Below, piece by piece: positions 871 to 62,856 of a stretch of 64,000 nucleotides of DNA. The notes under the pieces are model-generated. The model was not told where the DNA came from, searched no databases, and saw nothing but the letters and a program-made list of their open reading frames with translations. Each line of letters opens with the position of its first letter. The first letter of the stretch is position 1. The stretch is from sequence record OM456492.1; one strand, 5' to 3'. A program made the position numbers and the translations under genes.

Positions 871-2916
871 ATGACTTTTATTCCACGAAACGGCGCGCCG
901 TTGAATAACAAGCAAGGTTGGCAGGATAATTCTGTCCCCGAGCTTGTGCGCACCCCTACGGGTGACGCAATTCATAAGCCGCTGATCTTCACCTTTGCCG
1001 CGCGCGGGGTAGACAACGAGGCGTTCCCGTTAACCGGGGATAATGCACTGTCTCTGCTTGGTCGCAATGTCTTTGACTTGCGAGGCCCCTACGCGACGTT
1101 CAACACGCCCTATCAGGCGATGTTCAACGCTAACGCAAACGAGTGTATGTATCAGCGCTTGATCCCTGAAGATGCGAAGACCGCAAGTGTTCGCGTATTC
1201 GCCGACGTACTCGAAACGAAAGTTCCGTCCTACGAACGCGACGGCAACGGGATCGTTCAGTACGACAACTCGGGCAAGCCCAAGATCAAAGAACAAGTTG
1301 ACGGTTTGGTAATCGTCTTCCGTTCTGTCGTAATCGACGAAACTACCCCGGCCATCGGCGCAGGTGTGGTTATCGAAGGGACGATGACTGGCGAAGGCGG
1401 CACGAAATCGAAGCTGTATCCGTTGTTCGATATCGCAGGCCCGTATGCGGGTGCTGACGTCAACGGTTTCGGTTTCAAACTGATCCCACTCAGCGAGAAA
1501 TCCAGCCCGGCTCTGACCTCCTCCTATCAAAATGAAGTCGGTGGTCGTGTTTACAGCCTGCAATGGTTCGAAACCCTGGCAGGCGTGACTTCTCCGGTAG
1601 TGTGGAAAACTCTTACTGGCATGAGTAGCATCAATTTTAGCTTTAAGCCCGATGCATACTATCAGCCGATGAGAACGCAACTCGACTTCGAAGTTGTTGT
1701 TGCGGATGCATATCGTCAGACGATGCCTGACGTTGGCGAGCTGCCAGATTATGGTCCTTTCGAGCAGTTCTATCTGTATCGCGAGAACCTGGAAACTGTA
1801 CTGGGATTGGCTCAGGCTGCTATCAAGACTGATGCGCCTGCTGACCCGTATATGGTTGACATCTTTGGCGGCTATGATTTACTGGGCCAGCCTTACGATG
1901 GTCTTCAGGTAAACCCGGCTACTGAAACCGGTAAAGTTGTGTTCTCCGCATCCAACATCCACTACCTGCAAGGCGGTAGCGATGGTACCATGAACAACGA
2001 TGTTTACGACGAACTCGTTCGCCGCGAAATGTTGCTGTTCCCGGATGGCGGTAAAGTCCGTTACGACAACGAGCTGAAATACTCGCTGGGTTGTTTCTGG
2101 GACTCTGGCTTTAGCTTCGATACTAAAGCTGCGCTCGTGAACTTCATCGGTCGTTCACGTAACACCTTCTTGACGCTGGCGACTCACGTTTACAACCAAG
2201 GTCGTAACGATGAGCAGACAGAAGAAAGTGCAAAAATCGCCCTGATCGAATTGATCACTGCGGTACCGGAATCTGCCTATTACGGCACTCCGGCTGCACG
2301 CGGTATGGTTACCGGCCAATCGGCATTCATCAAGAACTCTTCCTACAAGAAGCCTGTTCCGATGAACTATTCCCTGGCGAACTTCTTCTCGAAGTACCTG
2401 GGTGCTGCTGAAGGTCGTGCAAAACCGGCTTATCGTTTCAGCCGTGGCGAACTGACGATTATCGAAGATCTGACTGACCTGAGTATGCCGTGGAAAGGCA
2501 ATGAAGTGTATGCGTCTGACTGGGACGTGTCGCTGATCACTGCCCGTTCCTACGACTACTATCGCTTGTTCATTCCGGCGATTCAGTCAATCTACAGCGA
2601 AGATCGTTCTGTACTGAACAACGCCCTGTTCAACTTCATGATGACCTACGTCTATCGTGTTTCCGACCGTGTATGGGCGGACATGTCTGGCGAAGCGGCC
2701 ATGACGGATGATGAACGTGCGAAGATGATTGAGAACAAAATTATCGAACGTCTGGAAGGTCGTCTCGATAACGTTGCTGTCGTCACTCCGAAGGCGTACT
2801 TCACTGCAGACGATAAATCCAATGGTTACTCTGTGACGCTGGACCTGATCGCTGAAGGCGGTGTGCTGCTCACCCAGTTCAACACCACTATCAAAGTTTA
2901 CCGTCGGGAGAGCTAA
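871..2916 (+). CDS. Contractile tail sheath protein (phiKZ gp29-like)
   Basis: 681 aa with a GGAG RBS. Sheath-like GGSDG motif and C-terminal RLEGRLD...VTPKAYFT region. Directly upstream of a tube-sized gene. Confidence 0.85.
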   Translation: MTFIPRNGAPLNNKQGWQDNSVPELVRTPTGDAIHKPLIFTFAARGVDNEAFPLTGDNALSLLGRNVFDLRGPYATFNTPYQAMFNANANECMYQRLIPEDAKTASVRVFADVLETKVPSYERDGNGIVQYDNSGKPKIKEQVDGLVIVFRSVVIDETTPAIGAGVVIEGTMTGEGGTKSKLYPLFDIAGPYAGADVNGFGFKLIPLSEKSSPALTSSYQNEVGGRVYSLQWFETLAGVTSPVVWKTLTGMSSINFSFKPDAYYQPMRTQLDFEVVVADAYRQTMPDVGELPDYGPFEQFYLYRENLETVLGLAQAAIKTDAPADPYMVDIFGGYDLLGQPYDGLQVNPATETGKVVFSASNIHYLQGGSDGTMNNDVYDELVRREMLLFPDGGKVRYDNELKYSLGCFWDSGFSFDTKAALVNFIGRSRNTFLTLATHVYNQGRNDEQTEESAKIALIELITAVPESAYYGTPAARGMVTGQSAFIKNSSYKKPVPMNYSLANFFSKYLGAAEGRAKPAYRFSRGELTIIEDLTDLSMPWKGNEVYASDWDVSLITARSYDYYRLFIPAIQSIYSEDRSVLNNALFNFMMTYVYRVSDRVWADMSGEAAMTDDERAKMIENKIIERLEGRLDNVAVVTPKAYFTADDKSNGYSVTLDLIAEGGVLLTQFNTTIKVYRRES

Positions 2917-2919
2917 TAG

Positions 2920-3795
2920 ATGGCAATCAAAGATCGTCTCATTTTGCCTGATCAGGGTCTGCACGTCGACGGCGGCCAGTACGATATGGTCAACGCGTTC
3001 TCCTCGGGCCAAAACGGCCCGGTTGGACAGGTTGGCAAGTTCGTTACTAACGCCAGCCGTCTGCGTCGTAACGTCATTGCGCGCGTCATGGAATTCCCTC
3101 GTTGGGTGGATTACATGCCGAACCCGCAGATGTGGCGTCAGGCTATCAAGTCCTTTATCGAGGTTCACTCCGAGATTACTGGCCTGGATAAAACCCTGAG
3201 CCATGCGGCTGTTGAAACACAGCAGGGTCGTAACAACCGTACCCAGTATGAAGCTGGTCTGGTAACGGAAGCACTGTCCTCTGTTACCTTCACCACCCCG
3301 GATAAACTCGGGAAGGTGTACCAGAATATGCTGTGGGCGTGGCTGGTTTACGGTGTTTGTGATCCCCAGACTGGTCACCCAGGCCTGGCCGCAATCAACC
3401 CGAACGTTCCTGACCACCTGCCGGATATGTACAGCATGACCGTGCTGTTCATCGAACCGGATGCATATCAGCGTAAACCGCAGAATGCGTGGTGGTTAAC
3501 GAACATGATTCCGGAAACCGCTGGCCAGGATATCGGTGAGCGTGAAACCAACACCGGTCCGCAGATTAACGAACTGTCAATCGCCTTTACCTCCCAGCAA
3601 TGGACAGGTTGGGGTCCGATGCAGGCCGCTGCGAAAGAGCTGGACCGTATGAAGTTGTACGGTCTGCGTCCTTACGAACGCAAACTGTGGCTTACTCCGT
3701 CTCAGCAGACCGACGGTATCAACCCGGACGTCAACGCAACCCCAGGTGGTTACAACTCTGTCTCCGACGAGCAGATGGCCAACCAGATGCGCTAA
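2920..3795 (+). CDS. Tail tube protein (phiKZ gp30-like)
   Basis: 291 aa, 3 nt after the sheath stop. Contains the MTVLFIEPD...WWLTNMIP tube-like segment and is followed by a terminator. Confidence 0.8.
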   Translation: MAIKDRLILPDQGLHVDGGQYDMVNAFSSGQNGPVGQVGKFVTNASRLRRNVIARVMEFPRWVDYMPNPQMWRQAIKSFIEVHSEITGLDKTLSHAAVETQQGRNNRTQYEAGLVTEALSSVTFTTPDKLGKVYQNMLWAWLVYGVCDPQTGHPGLAAINPNVPDHLPDMYSMTVLFIEPDAYQRKPQNAWWLTNMIPETAGQDIGERETNTGPQINELSIAFTSQQWTGWGPMQAAAKELDRMKLYGLRPYERKLWLTPSQQTDGINPDVNATPGGYNSVSDEQMANQMR

Positions 3796-3796
3796 G

Positions 3797-3852
3797 ACAA
3801 AAAAAAACAAGCGTTACCTCTCTCCATCTGGAGAGAGGTACGTTTTATTTTT
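3797..3852. terminator. Bidirectional intrinsic terminator
   Basis: TACCTCTCTCCA-TC-TGGAGAGAGGTA inverted repeat with an A-run before and a T-run after, between convergent genes. Confidence 0.85.
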
Positions 3853-4387
3853 TCGGTTGGCTAGCATCAATTTCACGCTGCGCATTGGCACGAATCAGCA
3901 AGTTCTTGATTTGTAACAATAACAGATAGGTTACGAGCACATCGAATTCAGACGGTGGTTGAACGTCGCCCAAGTCTGGATGGGCAATCTTCCAGAGAGA
4001 CATCCCGTCTTTATAACCTTGCCCTGATTCCGCTGCGAGAATGTCGTTGGTGGACATGCTAATGAGTTCGTGTTCCAGTTGACGGAGCACCTCGTCGCCC
4101 AATTCTACCTGCAACAGACATTTAAAGCGAATGATAAACCCCGCGATAATACGACCGCTACTACCTTTGGTGATCGTGTCGAGAAAACGCTGGTAGCCGT
4201 TGATGGTGTGCGGGATAATCTCAACCGGATATTCGGCAATGGTTTCGAATGCATCTTCCAGTATAGCTTTCATGGACAACGTAAACACGTCACCGATCTG
4301 ATTGATGTGGCGAATAATGTCTTCACGTTTCATATCAGATGGAATCGGTTTGATATCATCCTGACCGAGAGTATTAAGTTGCTTCAT
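3845..4387 (-). CDS. Hypothetical protein
   Basis: ORF track 3845..4423. Start moved to MKQLN (4387), which follows a GGAG RBS. Confidence 0.7.
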   Translation of the reverse strand: MKQLNTLGQDDIKPIPSDMKREDIIRHINQIGDVFTLSMKAILEDAFETIAEYPVEIIPHTINGYQRFLDTITKGSSGRIIAGFIIRFKCLLQVELGDEVLRQLEHELISMSTNDILAAESGQGYKDGMSLWKIAHPDLGDVQPPSEFDVLVTYLLLLQIKNLLIRANAQREIDASQPKK

Positions 4388-4402
4388 TGTAGCTCCAAAA
4401 TC

Positions 4403-4438
4403 AAAAAAAAATAGGGCAGTCATAAGACCACCCTATTG
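4403..4438 (-). terminator. Intrinsic terminator
   Basis: AATAGGG..GTC-ataa-GAC..CCCTATT stem with a T-run on the minus strand. Confidence 0.6.
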
Positions 4439-4492
4439 TTTACTGCTTCCGACCGAGTAGCTCAGCGAGTTACTTTGGGCTGGACGGAATCA

Positions 4493-4981
4493 TTATTCGT
4501 CGTCTTCGTCTTCTTCATCAGTTGCCATCATGGACTTGGCAAACTCTTTACGCAGTTTGCCTTCCAACGCTTTAGACTTCGGAGAACCGAAACCGTAAGA
4601 GATGGACGCTGCCCATTCTTTCTGAGTTGGGTTTTCAGTAACCGGGCGAGAGAACACGGTAGAGAATGCTGCGTTACCGATATCCAGCGTTAAGTCCAGT
4701 GCACCGATATCGCTATCCGCTTTTGCACGGTCAGCAATCAGACCACCGGCAACGCCACCGAACAGTTCAGTGAAGTTTGCGTCGTGCTGTCGCAGAGCGT
4801 CCGCGTCTTCCAGTGTGAAGCGATAGTCCACATCCCCAACTTTCGTTACCGGCAATGTGTCTTCGTAAATCTTAACCAGCGGGTCAGCGTTCAGCGCCAG
4901 GTCTTCGGACAGGGTTGCTGCCGGCGTGTCCAGTTCAGCGATCAGTTTGTGCAGTGCTTTCATTGAAGTTACTTCAGCCAT
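4493..4981 (-). CDS. Hypothetical protein with acidic C-terminal tail
   Basis: 162 aa, strong TAAGGA RBS, ends DEEDEDDE. Confidence 0.75.
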   Translation of the reverse strand: MAEVTSMKALHKLIAELDTPAATLSEDLALNADPLVKIYEDTLPVTKVGDVDYRFTLEDADALRQHDANFTELFGGVAGGLIADRAKADSDIGALDLTLDIGNAAFSTVFSRPVTENPTQKEWAASISYGFGSPKSKALEGKLRKEFAKSMMATDEEDEDDE

Positions 4982-5007
4982 CTTAATATTCCTTAAGGTC
5001 AGTGTGA

Positions 5008-5679
5008 TTAATCGTGTGAAAGACGAGCTTCGAGGTCGTCGATAATGGTATCTGTGAAATAGCTAATATCTAGCTGCTCCACGAAATCCCTGCGTTCCAG
5101 AATGCGCTCTGCGAAGAGCGTACCGTACCAACTAGGGACATTACTAACGCCGTTGCGTCCGAACTTCTGTTGGACATGACTAACGGCATGGAATTTTGCA
5201 TCACCTTTACTTTTACCCTGCTCACGGGCAAACAGATAAGAACGGTGCATGTAATTGCTCACGTCGTCTACAGACGGTATACCGCGGTCAGCTGCGGCAA
5301 CTATCTCAGAGACAATCCCGTTGTAGTTCCCTTTGTGAGAACTGCGGTGTTCTAAGACTGCATGGGCAATCGTCAAACACTCATCATCGGTAAGTTTATA
5401 CTTACGTTTGAGCACTGGCTTGTTATCCAGTATCCAGCTATACCCTTTGATGTGGTGCGACGCACGGTCTTCTTTGGTAGAGAAGATATCGTGAGCTGCC
5501 ACCGCAATCAGTATCAGCTTCAGGTGTTCGGTTTGCCCAAGCATATACGCGATACGAATCGCATTTGATTTAACTGAGTTGATGTGATCCATGCGATGCG
5601 CACTATCGGTATAACGATAGAAGTCGCGGAATTGACGAACCAGTTTTTCCCAAAGTTTGTTGAGTTCAGTGCCCTGCAT
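5008..5679 (-). CDS. HD-domain phosphohydrolase
   Basis: Motifs H(RMDH), AAHDIF, LEHR and AAADR match the H...HD...H...D pattern. Confidence 0.85.
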   Translation of the reverse strand: MQGTELNKLWEKLVRQFRDFYRYTDSAHRMDHINSVKSNAIRIAYMLGQTEHLKLILIAVAAHDIFSTKEDRASHHIKGYSWILDNKPVLKRKYKLTDDECLTIAHAVLEHRSSHKGNYNGIVSEIVAAADRGIPSVDDVSNYMHRSYLFAREQGKSKGDAKFHAVSHVQQKFGRNGVSNVPSWYGTLFAERILERRDFVEQLDISYFTDTIIDDLEARLSHD

Positions 5680-5713
5680 GTAAATATTCCTTACGATAAT
5701 GGTCGATTAACTA

Positions 5714-6103
5714 CTACGAGAATGTGTGATAACAACGTGTCAGTGTAACCTTCGCGTTATCAGAATGGTCTTCGTTGGTATACATCACCGGCCAGATAAT
5801 GTTATCAGACGAAAGCGCCTTTGATAACCCTTCAATCAATTCCTTCATTGAGGTTCCCTTCAGCCGATGGGTCGTACGCCACCTGTGTGACGTCATACGG
5901 CTATAAACCACCATATCTGGTGTAAGGGTACTACTTTCCTCCTTAATCTCCTCTAAACGCTTCTCCTCGCTTTCTACGAAGCTTAGTAAAGCATCTGGAT
6001 TTCGAACAAACTCACCGAAACGATCGTCTCGGCGCAAGCCACAAAGAACCCATAGCGTAAATGGATCTCTGCACGCATCTACCAACCCCTCTGCGATTTT
6101 CAT
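5714..6103 (-). CDS. Hypothetical protein (paralog of 6158..6556)
   Basis: 129 aa. Shares the DPF...LC...EKRL.E pattern with its neighbour. Confidence 0.7.
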   Translation of the reverse strand: MKIAEGLVDACRDPFTLWVLCGLRRDDRFGEFVRNPDALLSFVESEEKRLEEIKEESSTLTPDMVVYSRMTSHRWRTTHRLKGTSMKELIEGLSKALSSDNIIWPVMYTNEDHSDNAKVTLTRCYHTFS

Positions 6104-6556: not shown

Positions 6557-6615
6557 TGTAAATACTCCTTCTGGGTAATAGTCGATTAAAGCGTTAACGT
6601 GTAACGCTCACCTAA

Positions 6616-42268: not shown

Positions 42269-42366
42269 CAGGTGTTACCTTTTTGCAGTTCTCGTACATA
42301 AGGTTTGGGTGATACGTAAAAGACTTACTATGTAGCCCAATCCCTTATATATTCGAGGTTGATAGA

Positions 42367-43122
42367 ATGAATGTTAATCCACTTGCAGCGTTGTCGGGCT
42401 TTGTTGCCAAAGCATCCACGATTCTGCCTAAAGCCTTTAGCGGCTCTCAACAGGAACTCGCGCTGACCACCTATGACGACATGTCTGATGTGTCCAAGTG
42501 GATGCAGCAAGAGAAGTTTTTAAACTTTACCGGAATGCTTGTACCCGTACCTCCGGGCTTCAACACGTATGTGATGGACCACATAGAACGGTTGGAATCT
42601 GTATGGGCTGTGCTCCAGAAGATTCAGGAAGGGGTTTTAACACCCATCGATAAACGTTTCGGTGCGATGACCCATGACCTGGGCATGTTAACTCTGCCGA
42701 TTGGGTTTAAGTTCAAAGACCTGAACTACCCACTGAAAAATATCAATCCAAAAGATCTGGTTGAGAAACTGGCGAAGTCGTATACCAACAACGTCATTGA
42801 CCAGCGTCCGATTGAAAAGACCTACCACAGCGCGGGCGAGATCGATGTTGCATTTAATCGTGCCAAAGCGCTGAACCTGGAAGTGACTAAGAAACTTCAG
42901 AAAAGTATTGACCGTACAGTTGAAAGCATCAATGTCTCTGTGGATATTATCTCTAATTCACAAGTCCATCCTAATGTGGCGGCAGAGTTAGTGAAGATGG
43001 CTGACATGGGTGCTGACTGGGTTGAGCTGTTCGGACTGTTTATGAAACAGATTAATGAACTGACAGAATGCCTGAACGTAACCGGTGATCGCCTCAAGAC
43101 CCTGAAAGCAAACAAAAAATAA
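42367..43122 (+). CDS. Probable virion (head) protein
   Basis: 251 aa on the + strand, GAGG RBS, own terminator. Same orientation as other structural genes. Confidence 0.55.
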   Translation: MNVNPLAALSGFVAKASTILPKAFSGSQQELALTTYDDMSDVSKWMQQEKFLNFTGMLVPVPPGFNTYVMDHIERLESVWAVLQKIQEGVLTPIDKRFGAMTHDLGMLTLPIGFKFKDLNYPLKNINPKDLVEKLAKSYTNNVIDQRPIEKTYHSAGEIDVAFNRAKALNLEVTKKLQKSIDRTVESINVSVDIISNSQVHPNVAAELVKMADMGADWVELFGLFMKQINELTECLNVTGDRLKTLKANKK

Positions 43123-43173
43123 AACGTGATACCTCCCACCTACCGTAACTGGTAGGTGGGAGGGTTTTATTTT
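43116..43173. terminator. Bidirectional intrinsic terminator
   Basis: CCTCCCACCTACC-gtaact-GGTAGGTGGGAGG with flanking A and T runs. Confidence 0.88.
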
Positions 43174-44095
43174 AAACGGTAAGGAAACCACGAACGAGCG
43201 TTGGTGGAATCCATCTTACGACTTTCTGGCGTACGCCATCGCGCGGACCTTTCCAGAAAGTGTGCCAATGTGCACGCCGCATATGTGCTTTACGACCACC
43301 TTCTCTTAATCCGCTCGTGGTTGTTCCGTACTGATTGAGATAGCGTTCCTGTTCGTTTATGGTTGAAATAACAATTGGCTTAGATCGTGGCTGGACATGA
43401 TAATCCGGCATCGTTTTTCTTTTCTTCCTTTTTGGGTATACCGTAGGTTCGGGATAACGCGGGATGAGAGAACAGGTAAAGAGCATTGCAGTGACTAGCC
43501 GATGGGGTGCCTCTGTCCATTCATCGAACACCCCACTAAGTTTAACAAAGCCGTTCCCCACATCTACGATTTCTGCGACATCAACCTGTACACAATCGAC
43601 CGCGTTACGAAAAATACTTAGAATCAAACAGTCTTTTCCTTGAATCCACCGCCTGGAGATATAATAAACCAATTCCAGTTTTTCACCAGTCTGCTGTATG
43701 ATCTCTAGGGGGAATTCTACGGTCCATCCTGGGATTTTATCAAACCAGTCTCGCGGCAATTCATCGAGAAGATCGGAGCCTATCATCTGTTCAAATACAA
43801 AAGAGTCACCGATAAGTAACACACCACCATAACGGTAACCGTGTGCGATAGTGGCGTAAAGATTTTGAACTTCAAGGTTTTTCGGAGTAGACGATAAGAA
43901 ATATTCCGGTGGAATGAACCGCTGACCTATGCGCCCCTCGTGCTCAGACGCATATTTCTCAACCAAGTTGATGCCCCTGGAACGTTCATTTGCTTTACTC
44001 AACATGACAAGGAAATCACCATCGGTTTTCACTCTATCAGCATCAATACCCAGCAATTTTAATGCTACTTTATCACTTTCACCAATGTTAAACAT
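43172..44095 (-). CDS. AcrVA2/FinQ-like protein
   Basis: C-terminal RKAHMRRAHWHTFWKG...VRWIPPTLV and central LLDELP.DWF.KIPGWTV match the recalled AcrVA2 segments KRPHIRRGHWHGYWQG...VRWQPAVFV and LPDDTP.SIF.NLPDWCV. Confidence 0.65.
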   Translation of the reverse strand: MFNIGESDKVALKLLGIDADRVKTDGDFLVMLSKANERSRGINLVEKYASEHEGRIGQRFIPPEYFLSSTPKNLEVQNLYATIAHGYRYGGVLLIGDSFVFEQMIGSDLLDELPRDWFDKIPGWTVEFPLEIIQQTGEKLELVYYISRRWIQGKDCLILSIFRNAVDCVQVDVAEIVDVGNGFVKLSGVFDEWTEAPHRLVTAMLFTCSLIPRYPEPTVYPKRKKRKTMPDYHVQPRSKPIVISTINEQERYLNQYGTTTSGLREGGRKAHMRRAHWHTFWKGPRDGVRQKVVRWIPPTLVRGFLTV

Positions 44096-44122
44096 TTTAA
44101 TACTCCTTACGTAAATAGTCGA

Positions 44123-44160
44123 TTAAAAAATAAAACTGCGGACACCCCGAAGAGTGTCCG
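44123..44160 (-). terminator. Intrinsic terminator
   Basis: Minus strand CGGACACTC-TTCG-GGGTGTCCG followed by TTTTATTTTTT. Confidence 0.85.
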
Positions 44161-44165
44161 TTTAA

Positions 44166-44708
44166 TTAGAAGTTGCCAATAGCGATAGGCTGCATTGGCT
44201 CGACCACAATCAGTATTTCTTTCAGACGCGAAACGATATGCTCCCAGACTTGTGCTTCGAGATGACGTAGCATAGTGGTGAACTCCTCCATGTACATCTC
44301 TTTAAACTCGTCGCGATTGAGATGTTCCCACGCTTCTTTCAATGGGCCTGCTTCTGGACCAGACATCTTGATCATCATTTCGATGTCTTTCATCTCATCA
44401 AACGCCTTGCCGACTTTATCAATAACCTCGTCGGTCTTGAGTTCGAGTGAGAAACGACCCATCTTAGACTGCAGGAAGCCGTCTTCAATATCTTCGTCGT
44501 TGTATTCGAAACACGCAATACGTTGCGCGAGTTGATGAACTTCATTTACCGCGATGTTGACGTACGCCGCAGAAATAAGTCCAGCGAGGTGCTGACGATC
44601 GATATTCTTTGGTATCAGATAGTCTTCACACTTACGCTTAAACTCGAACAACGCCGCTGGAAATATTTCACGAAATTCGTCATCGAGTAAATCAATGAAT
44701 ATTTTCAT
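44166..44708 (-). CDS. Acidic hypothetical protein (array member)
   Basis: 180 aa, ATGA-coupled, similar to 44705..45244. Confidence 0.7.
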   Translation of the reverse strand: MKIFIDLLDDEFREIFPAALFEFKRKCEDYLIPKNIDRQHLAGLISAAYVNIAVNEVHQLAQRIACFEYNDEDIEDGFLQSKMGRFSLELKTDEVIDKVGKAFDEMKDIEMMIKMSGPEAGPLKEAWEHLNRDEFKEMYMEEFTTMLRHLEAQVWEHIVSRLKEILIVVEPMQPIAIGNF

Positions 44709-45244
44709 TCAACAGGTTTCCCATATTTCTCGCCGAGATACAGCAGTTCACGACGACAGATAGCCAGCACTTTCATTTCCGCTTCACGATACAGCTTGGT
44801 GATTTTGTCAATGATTGGCTGGTCAACGATATCAGACCAAGTTACCGTATCCGTAACGTTCGATGATTGCCCGTTAATGACCACAGCAACGTATGTCTCG
44901 CCCAGGTTCTCTTGATGTAACCCCGCCAGAGATTCACCAACCTTATCAAAGGCTTCACTCAATAAGTCGGTGATTTGGTCCGTCCCTTCTACCAGTTCAA
45001 AACGATGGGGATAGTTCAGAATGTTACGCAGCCGCGTGAACATGCGTTCAATAAGCTGATTTACCATATCCTCAGTGTCACAGATAGCCACATCTACGCC
45101 CGAACCTATTTCGTCAGACAAACGATTTTCGTGGACGACCAACGCGTCGTGAAGTTCAAATTCCACGTCTCGTTTTAATCCTAACAGAATTTCATCTAGC
45201 TGACGTCTCGACTCCGACAGAGCGAAGTCTATTACGATTTGCAT
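44705..45244 (-). CDS. Acidic hypothetical protein (array member)
   Basis: 179 aa, TAAGGAG RBS. Confidence 0.72.
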   Translation of the reverse strand: MQIVIDFALSESRRQLDEILLGLKRDVEFELHDALVVHENRLSDEIGSGVDVAICDTEDMVNQLIERMFTRLRNILNYPHRFELVEGTDQITDLLSEAFDKVGESLAGLHQENLGETYVAVVINGQSSNVTDTVTWSDIVDQPIIDKITKLYREAEMKVLAICRRELLYLGEKYGKPVE

Positions 45245-45254
45245 CTAATACTCC

Positions 45255-45662
45255 TTAAAAGTTACTTACCTCGGGCTGCGTATACCAGTATCTGCACGCT
45301 ACGAGATCCACAACGTTATATTTCAGTTGCCCACCGTGCTGTGACGTGTCTGCCAATTCATGCGCAAGCTTGTACGCCAAATCTTCACGGTTGTCGAGGA
45401 TAAGCAGCACAACACGTTGCACCTCATTAAAGATATCCGGTTCACGTAAACAACTGTAGCGGTCGCTAAGATGCTTAATAACGCCTTTATAAACATCTCC
45501 TGGTACAGCAGTGCCATTTTCTGCCGCGTGGAATGAAACAAGCACGATTTTAATTAAAATCTCGACAACCATGGAGTATATCATTCCACGGTTGCCGTTA
45601 ATTTCCACATGCTTTAGATACTCTTGCAAGTCCATCAGTGACTCGCTATACACCTTTAACAT
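45255..45662 (-). CDS. Hypothetical protein (array member)
   Basis: 135 aa. N-terminus MLKVYSESL resembles MLRVVSESL of 46846..47586. Confidence 0.7.
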   Translation of the reverse strand: MLKVYSESLMDLQEYLKHVEINGNRGMIYSMVVEILIKIVLVSFHAAENGTAVPGDVYKGVIKHLSDRYSCLREPDIFNEVQRVVLLILDNREDLAYKLAHELADTSQHGGQLKYNVVDLVACRYWYTQPEVSNF

Positions 45663-62753: not shown

Positions 62754-62780
62754 TTGCTTAGTCCTTACGAGTAATAGTCG

Positions 62781-62856
62781 ATTAAAAAGGACCCTGCGGC
62801 TATGTGTTGGGGATATCACCGCAGGGCCAAAGTGAGATGGGTCGTCATCTCACGTT
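62781..62856 (-). ncRNA. Candidate ~75-nt small RNA or attenuator leader
   Basis: Directly after the promoter motif: hairpin GTGAGATG/CATCTCAC, then CCCTGCGG/CCGCAGGG with TTTTT. Confidence 0.4.

Follow-up and report, generated by a model that had tools for sequence, protein, structure and literature searches.

An AcrVA2/FinQ-family gene at a variable locus of the jumbo Salmonella phage SaP7

AcrVA2, encoded by a prophage of Moraxella bovoculi, recognises the nascent Cas12a polypeptide and causes the loss of the cas12a mRNA (Marino et al., bioRxiv 10.1101/2022.11.29.518452). It is so far the sole bacterial example in which recognition of a nascent polypeptide goes together with removal of its mRNA. 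In the same study, a variable recognition part and a constant effector part were described for both AcrVA2 and FinQ, the fertility inhibitor of IncI-type plasmids of Escherichia coli and Salmonella; about 1,800 AcrVA2 orthologs were reported on plasmids and megaphages, mostly in bacteria devoid of Cas12a, and other targets were proposed. In the present work, a gene of this family was analysed in the jumbo Salmonella phage SaP7. The DNA studied, hereafter called the window, is the whole stretch forming the final 64 kb of the SaP7 record (OM456492.1, 240,613 bp, Seoulvirus SPN3US; region 42300-45300 of the window matched the record at 100%). The gene is located at 43172..44095 on the minus strand of the window, where the record labels its product only "hypothetical protein" (ULF48428.1).

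Huge-phage proteins that cluster with AcrVA2 are known (Al-Shayeb et al., PMC7162821), as is an AcrVA2 homolog in a Shewanella phage (PMC10846135). The first-pass annotation of this DNA, which presented an AcrVA2-like protein in the absence of Cas12a as a finding of its own, was therefore overstated on this point: such proteins were already reported by Marino et al., and the huge-phage AcrVA2 cluster in PMC7162821. What is new is the placement of the SaP7 gene and its phage clade (PHROG 6160) in the AcrVA2/FinQ family with strong statistics, as given by profile comparisons, and the description of the locus, from aligned genomes, as a hot spot of presence/absence, allele swapping and duplication in SPN3US-like, Erskinevirus and Machinavirus phages. 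The annotation is also corrected, the gene being "hypothetical" in SaP7 and unannotated in phage JN03, and its homolog in phage RisingSun being called a "mycothiosynthase".

Relationship of the SaP7 protein to AcrVA2 and FinQ

When the SaP7 protein alone was compared with all Protein Data Bank (PDB) sequences, the top and only significant match was AcrVA2 (7ci1/7ci2), with an expectation value (E) of 0.0039. Significance was reached just for the 42 C-terminal residues 261-302, accompanied by a sub-threshold collinear patch at residues 108-131. With a profile built from the SaP7 protein and five relatives (6-sequence profile), the match to AcrVA2 reached an E of 3.8e-8 and covered positions 85-307 against residues 73-317 of the chain. 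A 60-sequence family profile matched AcrVA2 7ci1 with an E of 5.3e-41, positions 14-303 being aligned with residues 12-318 of the 323 of the chain, and no other PDB entry was close in score. The first-pass annotation had described the similarity as spanning the protein. This holds in profile comparison, where the match extends well past the short C-terminal motif, whereas the single sequence reveals that motif only.

A tblastn search of plasmids with the SaP7 protein failed to reach FinQ directly, and a Providencia plasmid homolog, which matches the SaP7 protein with an E of 1e-7 over 80% of its length, served as intermediate. With this homolog as query, 744 plasmid records were matched, including 310 from Escherichia and 145 from Salmonella, and the sampled Escherichia, Salmonella, Shigella and Klebsiella matches carried the label "protein FinQ". 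An annotated FinQ from an IncI-gamma/K1 plasmid of E. coli (surface water) was aligned with the 60-sequence profile (hhalign 99.9%, E of 6.6e-35), and the full open reading frame (ORF) of FinQ, 363 residues long, with the 6-sequence close-subfamily profile (hhalign 97.7%, E of 2.2e-12). Direct BLASTP of FinQ against the SaP7 protein gave an E of 9e-8, limited to the C-terminal motif. Kinship with both AcrVA2 and FinQ, as read in the first-pass annotation, is thus borne out by the matches to 7ci1 and to annotated FinQ. Because the profiles match both proteins, membership of the 307-residue SaP7 protein in the AcrVA2/FinQ family can be considered established from sequence.

Two observations were made on the plasmid-borne members themselves. 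In the E. coli plasmid pNMBU-W12E19_02, the RefSeq finQ coding sequence (259 residues, from position 2567) begins within the 363-residue ORF (2255-3346), and the alignment of the family-conserved region starts at residue 91 of this ORF, upstream of the annotated start; as judged from this alignment, the annotated FinQ may be N-terminally truncated. The conjugative Providencia rettgeri plasmid p06-1619-1 carries a 356-residue family member (3689-4759) next to ssb, parG/parA, mazEF and hok, a neighbourhood that resembles a plasmid leading/maintenance region.

The family is very large. In a library of 1.84 billion proteins clustered at 50% identity, the 6-sequence profile recovered 2,841 cluster representatives (680 of them at E <= 1e-10), yet the known targets are only Cas12a and the F tra genes. 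The matches are mostly 300-390 residues long and are found on plasmids and phages; with 307 residues and a phage location, the SaP7 protein fits the family pattern of a single mobile-element protein of ~300-360 residues. Its overall identity to distant members is 13-22%. In PHROGs it matched family 6160, to which no function is assigned there, with an E of 8e-46, and the precomputed Pfam tag PF26125.1 is present on every relative. Scans of the SaP7 protein and its relatives with local Pfam, NCBIfam and PADLOC models gave no match, the empty Pfam scans being due to the absence of the PF26125 model from the local copy; no mention of this accession was found in the literature. In IMG/VR, one 246-kb Asesino-like contig was retrieved, and more distant members lie on viral contigs of 7-109 kb, mostly 27-67 kb. 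Since these contigs are small, the family is not restricted to jumbo phages.

In AcrVA2, residues H286, R288 and H291 are required for mRNA down-regulation and dispensable for binding, and W79 and D89 have a moderate effect (Marino et al.). Residues H271, R273 and H276 of the SaP7 protein align with H287, R289 and H292 of the 7ci1 chain, which correspond to this triad; we infer an offset of +1 between the PDB chain and the numbering of Marino et al., because all five residues, W79 and D89 included, fit the same shift. The C-terminal motif with its reported essential His, pointed out in the first-pass annotation, is therefore present, and the whole His-x-Arg-x-x-His-Trp signature is intact (H271, R273, H276, W277). 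In each of the His/Arg/His columns, 59 of the 60 members of the family alignment have an identical residue. At the position of AcrVA2 D89, the SaP7 protein has D97, and Asp is found there in 49 of the 60 members.

Conservation is unevenly distributed along the protein. Among 15 subfamily members, the mean pairwise identity was 15-28% for residues 1-80, 17-24% for residues 161-200 and 50-60% for residues 261-300, residues 1-80 being the least conserved portion even between phage alleles. When the recognition regions were compared, the 6-sequence subfamily profile aligned with AcrVA2 from position 85 on, and the first ~84 residues were without detectable similarity. Three regions were delineated, the secondary structure being that of the AlphaFold2 model presented below:

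Residues 1-~85: variable, mostly helical N-terminal region (block-wise conservation and model secondary structure).
Residues ~90-210: beta-rich middle region (model secondary structure).
Residues ~240-303: conserved C-terminal module with H271, R273, H276 and W277 (conserved columns).

As seen in the alignment, this gradient is consistent with recognition by a variable part, joined to a constant part with an effector role.

Variability and organisation of the locus

The gene and the elements that surround it in the window are the following:

42367..43122, plus strand: gp214 homolog, conserved flank (ORF and comparison with SPN3US).
43132..43163, both strands: hairpin with a 14-bp stem and T-runs on both strands, bidirectional terminator-like, common to the AcrVA2-like gene (minus) and the convergent gp214 homolog (plus).
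43172..44095, minus strand: coding sequence of the AcrVA2/FinQ-family protein, 307 residues, ATG start.
44103..44108, minus strand: Shine-Dalgarno sequence AAGGAG, 7 nucleotides before the ATG, read from the sequence.
44114..44126, minus strand: 13-nucleotide motif TTAATCGACTATT, candidate phage promoter or leader, defined by its exact copies.
44129..44160 (hairpin 44139-44160), minus strand: hairpin and T-run, terminator-like end of the gp213 homolog; the same hairpin is found in JN03.
44166..44708, minus strand: gp213 homolog (hypothetical protein), upstream flank on the same strand as the AcrVA2-like gene (ORF and comparison with SPN3US).
43124..44184: variable segment with respect to SPN3US, ~1.06 kb in SaP7 replacing ~80 bp in SPN3US.

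The flanks were found at high identity in 36 phage records from Salmonella, Escherichia, Enterobacteria and Proteus. By tblastn, the protein was present in at most five Salmonella/Escherichia phage records, so that at least 31 of the 36 close relatives are without the gene. Among the latter is SPN3US itself, in which the gp214-gp213 spacer consists of 62 bp with one hairpin. Phages JN03, EC001 and Lh1B have an intact 307-residue gene at the same site and share one allele; in JN03 (MT799840.1) the ORF, at 1875-2798 of the extracted stretch, falls in a 1-kb stretch without any annotated gene. Between SaP7 and JN03 the AcrVA2-like proteins are 41% identical, whereas the flanking proteins are 97-100% identical. 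As near-identity returns exactly at the start codon and the 5' leader, it appears from the aligned sequences that the exchange of alleles took place between regulatory ends that are conserved. The identity of the SaP7 allele is higher with the allele of Erwinia phage Asesino (52%) than with the JN03 allele (41%). In Asesino (Erskinevirus, gp235) and in ChrisDB (Machinavirus, gp236, 30%), the gene occupies the syntenic site, by a gp214-like gene and uvsX.

A further arrangement was found in NZ_CP134650.1, the 222-kb "plasmid unnamed1" of Enterobacter ludwigii, typed as non-mobilizable. It shares synteny with SaP7 over the stretch between RNase H and UvsX (83% identity between the UvsX proteins), and these sequence features suggest that a jumbo-phage genome was deposited under the name of a plasmid. 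Its slot contains two tandem AcrVA2-like paralogs (3893-4828 and 4839-5723 of the extracted stretch), 27% identical to each other. All six phage alleles, with identities of 24-52%, are intact ORFs of similar length. From the presence/absence polymorphism, the allele replacement and the tandem duplication, we infer that this site serves as a counter-defence slot with fast turnover. Base composition gives no sign of a foreign origin of the cassette, its G+C content being like that of the flanks.

The AcrVA2-like gene is located among replication/recombination genes, e.g. those of UvsX and RNase H. The gp214 protein of SPN3US is essential and head-associated (PMC5105663). On the other side of the gene, the gp213 and gp212 homologs (window 44166-45244) are only 3-31% identical between SaP7 and its Erwinia/Enterobacter relatives, against 80-88% for UvsX; the variable region thus reaches past the AcrVA2-like gene. 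No homing endonuclease or transposase adjoins the gene among the window ORFs or in the SaP7 annotation.

The upstream terminator-like hairpin, which is GC-rich, insulates the cassette from the gp213 homolog. All the parts of the self-contained layout announced by the first-pass annotation, i.e. this hairpin, the leader motif, the Shine-Dalgarno sequence and the two-way terminator-like hairpin, were recovered, and the same succession of hairpin, short motif, Shine-Dalgarno sequence, ORF and second hairpin frames all six phage alleles. The motif TTAATCGACTATT has three exact copies within the window, and the sites of the motif or its core there, all on the minus strand, are 44114-44126, 62773-62785, 6577-6589 and 5698-5710. 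Over the whole SaP7 record, the 11-nucleotide core AATCGACTATT (AATCGAC(T/C)ATT) was matched 15 times with at most one mismatch. Nine of these 15 matches sit 14-20 nucleotides before a start codon preceded by a Shine-Dalgarno sequence, all nine on the minus strand, which is the main coding strand, and several of them come directly after a hairpin. The genes downstream of core copies include those of a putative transcriptional regulator and of an HD-domain protein. The core is also conserved before the JN03 allele and, in part, before that of Asesino.

In jumbo phages that have RNA polymerases of their own, early promoters are marked by short, AT-rich conserved motifs, which vary between phages (PMC7598289). 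The 13-nucleotide motif is probably, to judge by the position of its copies, a phage promoter or leader for about ten transcription units; a literature search for published SPN3US promoter or transcriptome data able to classify it found none. Sigma-70 promoter-like sites in the region were set aside, as their number (9) was not in excess of that in shuffled sequence (5.7 +/- 2.4).

Proposed function and alternative explanations

SaP7 carries the hallmarks of phiKZ-like jumbo phages: split multisubunit RNA polymerase genes, a tail sheath, UvsX and RNase H. A homolog of ChmA (chimallin) is listed for SPN3US (PMC10643120) and, given this homolog and the species-level identity of the two phages, SaP7 is very probably a phage that builds a protein nucleus. 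In phiKZ-related phages, such a nucleus has been described as keeping host nucleases off the phage DNA. The presence of ChmA in the lineage agrees with the remark of the first-pass annotation that the phage mRNAs remain exposed to host systems: the mRNAs, and not the DNA, would be in contact with the cytoplasm.

By analogy with AcrVA2, we think there is a reasonable chance, somewhat above even, that the SaP7 gene is a stand-alone unit making a cytoplasmic polypeptide-specific mRNA silencer, directed at a target other than Cas12a and kept in a fast-turnover counter-defence slot. In this mechanism, the gene would be transcribed on its own from the phage-specific promoter-like motif and the protein would act in the cytoplasm. 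One specific protein would be singled out, as a nascent chain, by the variable N-terminal and middle parts, and the conserved His-x-Arg-x-x-His-Trp module would trigger the loss of the target's mRNA, as AcrVA2 does for Cas12a. The target would most likely be encoded by the host or by a co-resident element (plasmid, prophage or competing phage) and would be newly made in infection; an inducible defence and a protein of a competitor are examples. Because a block on biogenesis leaves pre-existing protein in place (Marino et al.) and the phage is virulent, a target made after infection starts is the most plausible. The FinQ branch is common on IncI plasmids of the same hosts, which shows the family to be in use there in mobile-element conflicts.

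Several points weigh against this proposal. The silencing function, suggested in the first-pass annotation as co-translational decay of the mRNA of a different host defence or host gene, is extrapolated by homology from one characterised member, AcrVA2 (Marino et al.). The original account of FinQ was one of transcription termination at multiple sites in tra. A virulent phage would profit less from a block on biogenesis than a prophage or a plasmid. In the column of AcrVA2 W79, where the mutation W79A weakened AcrVA2 (Marino et al.), the SaP7 protein has Tyr87, whereas Trp is found in 54 of the 60 members and in the JN03 allele. The 13-nucleotide motif is a candidate as regards both promoter role and timing. 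Finally, the AlphaFold2 model, obtained from an alignment of 21 sequences, is of modest confidence (predicted local distance difference test score of 63.5, predicted template modelling score of 0.60), and a Foldseek search of the PDB with this model gave no match at E <= 0.001, 7ci1 not being among the best 50 listed.

We read the Foldseek result as a failure of a mediocre model and not as evidence against homology, because undoubted homologs obtained low scores too: against BFVD, the only matches were uncharacterised jumbo-phage homologs (Yoloswag, JA13 and RisingSun), with template modelling scores of 0.3-0.4. In the model, helices at the N-terminus are followed by a middle part rich in beta structure, which includes one long helix, and by four strands at the C-terminus. 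This order agrees with the three-domain description of AcrVA2-type proteins (PMC10846135), in which a helical N-terminal, a beta/alpha middle and a four-strand C-terminal domain are distinguished. The RisingSun family member (MF459646.1, 128482-129123) is labelled "putative mycothiosynthase"; no support for this label was found here, and it is likely a misannotation.

The intact effector motif, and the fact that AcrVA2 is the sole solved relative, could also be taken to indicate a classical anti-CRISPR directed, like AcrVA2, against Cas12a. To our knowledge, however, Salmonella and E. coli do not carry type V-A systems (Cas12a). They carry type I CRISPR systems. Since Cas12a is not known from the hosts of SaP7, the target would differ from that of AcrVA2. 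Furthermore, most family members occur without Cas12a (Marino et al.), the first ~84 residues of the phage subfamily are without AcrVA2 similarity detectable by the 6-sequence profile, overall identity to distant family members is low (13-22%), and the DNA of this lineage would itself be shielded in a protein nucleus. Given the hosts, the distribution of the orthologs and the unrelated recognition region, Cas12a is very unlikely to be the target, and this explanation is scarcely credible.

A second explanation retains the fold and changes the action: the protein could bind a mature protein and inhibit it stoichiometrically, or it could end transcription in the manner first suggested for FinQ from the multiple termination sites in tra. 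It would be compatible with the Tyr at the Trp79-equivalent position, with the binding of mature Cas12a peptides by AcrVA2 and with the want of a known decay machinery. However, the best-conserved part of the protein is the His/Arg/His triad, which in AcrVA2 is needed for mRNA down-regulation and not for binding, and the FinQ phenotype was reinterpreted as reduced mRNA by Marino et al. We regard another mode of action as unlikely.

The setting of the gene also bears on two explanations that involve no host or rival target. Its regulatory motif, common to about nine other phage transcription units, and its place among replication/recombination genes (UvsX, RNase H) would suit a temporal switch acting on a phage mRNA. 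However, one would not expect a core regulator to be lacking in 31 or more of 36 near-identical genomes, to be replaced by an allele of 41% identity or to occur in two copies, and self-regulation has little chance of being correct. The same polymorphism, with most relatives managing without the gene, would be expected of a selfish or decaying passenger cassette, functionless in SaP7. Against such a passenger stand the six alleles, all intact and of similar length in spite of identities of 24-52%, the conservation of the effector motif and of the regulatory frame, a G+C content equal to that of the flanks, and the absence of an adjoining homing endonuclease or transposase; a functionless cassette would be just as surprising as a regulator. 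An mRNA silencer with a target other than Cas12a is the explanation that we prefer.

A broader and more speculative extension, which we consider doubtful, is that nucleus-building jumbo phages set aside a slot, with rapid exchange of its content, for mRNA silencers specific for nascent chains, a different cytoplasmic threat being the target of each allele or tandem pair. If this were true, the threats would be infection-induced defences targeting RNA or translation, or proteins of rival elements, which the phage nucleus cannot exclude, and the natural alleles would constitute a library of recognition modules joined to one constant decay-triggering module. The SaP7 locus is tractable in Salmonella/E. 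coli: there are natural isolates without the gene, two 41%-identical alleles in near-identical genomes and one two-copy relative. Due to this natural variation in allele and presence, the question of what else the family silences can be approached by descriptive transcriptomics.

Comparison with known systems

The SaP7 protein resembles AcrVA2 (PDB 7CI1/7CI2) over nearly its full length in profile comparison (E of 5.3e-41) and in size (307 residues against a chain of 323). Both are carried by mobile elements, and the SaP7 protein keeps the His/Arg/His triad and the equivalent of Asp89; in the model, the helical N-terminus, the beta-rich middle and the four-strand C-terminus would follow in the same order. 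The two differ in that pairwise significance is limited to the 42 C-terminal residues, the N-terminal ~84 residues of the SaP7 protein are unrelated at the level of the subfamily profile, and Trp79 is replaced by Tyr. In addition, the SaP7 gene is carried by a virulent jumbo phage that has a chimallin homolog and AcrVA2 by a prophage, and no partner acr gene such as acrVA1 adjoins the SaP7 gene.

FinQ belongs to the same family by hhalign (99.9% and 97.7%), is found in the same host genera as SaP7-type phages (on Escherichia and Salmonella plasmids) and, as proposed for the SaP7 protein, has a target outside CRISPR systems. Unlike the SaP7 protein, FinQ is plasmid-borne, reduces F tra transcripts and has a longer ORF (363 residues), and beyond the C-terminal motif its likeness to the SaP7 protein is visible through profiles only.

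The nearest relatives are the jumbo-phage homologs of PHROG 6160 (Asesino gp235, ChrisDB gp236 and the gene of JN03, EC001 and Lh1B), which are annotated as hypothetical or are not annotated at all. They occupy the same slot between gp213-like and gp214-like genes near uvsX, have the same length and the same regulatory frame, and are 30-52% identical to the SaP7 protein; what sets them apart from one another is that the alleles diverge far more than the rest of the genomes that carry them.

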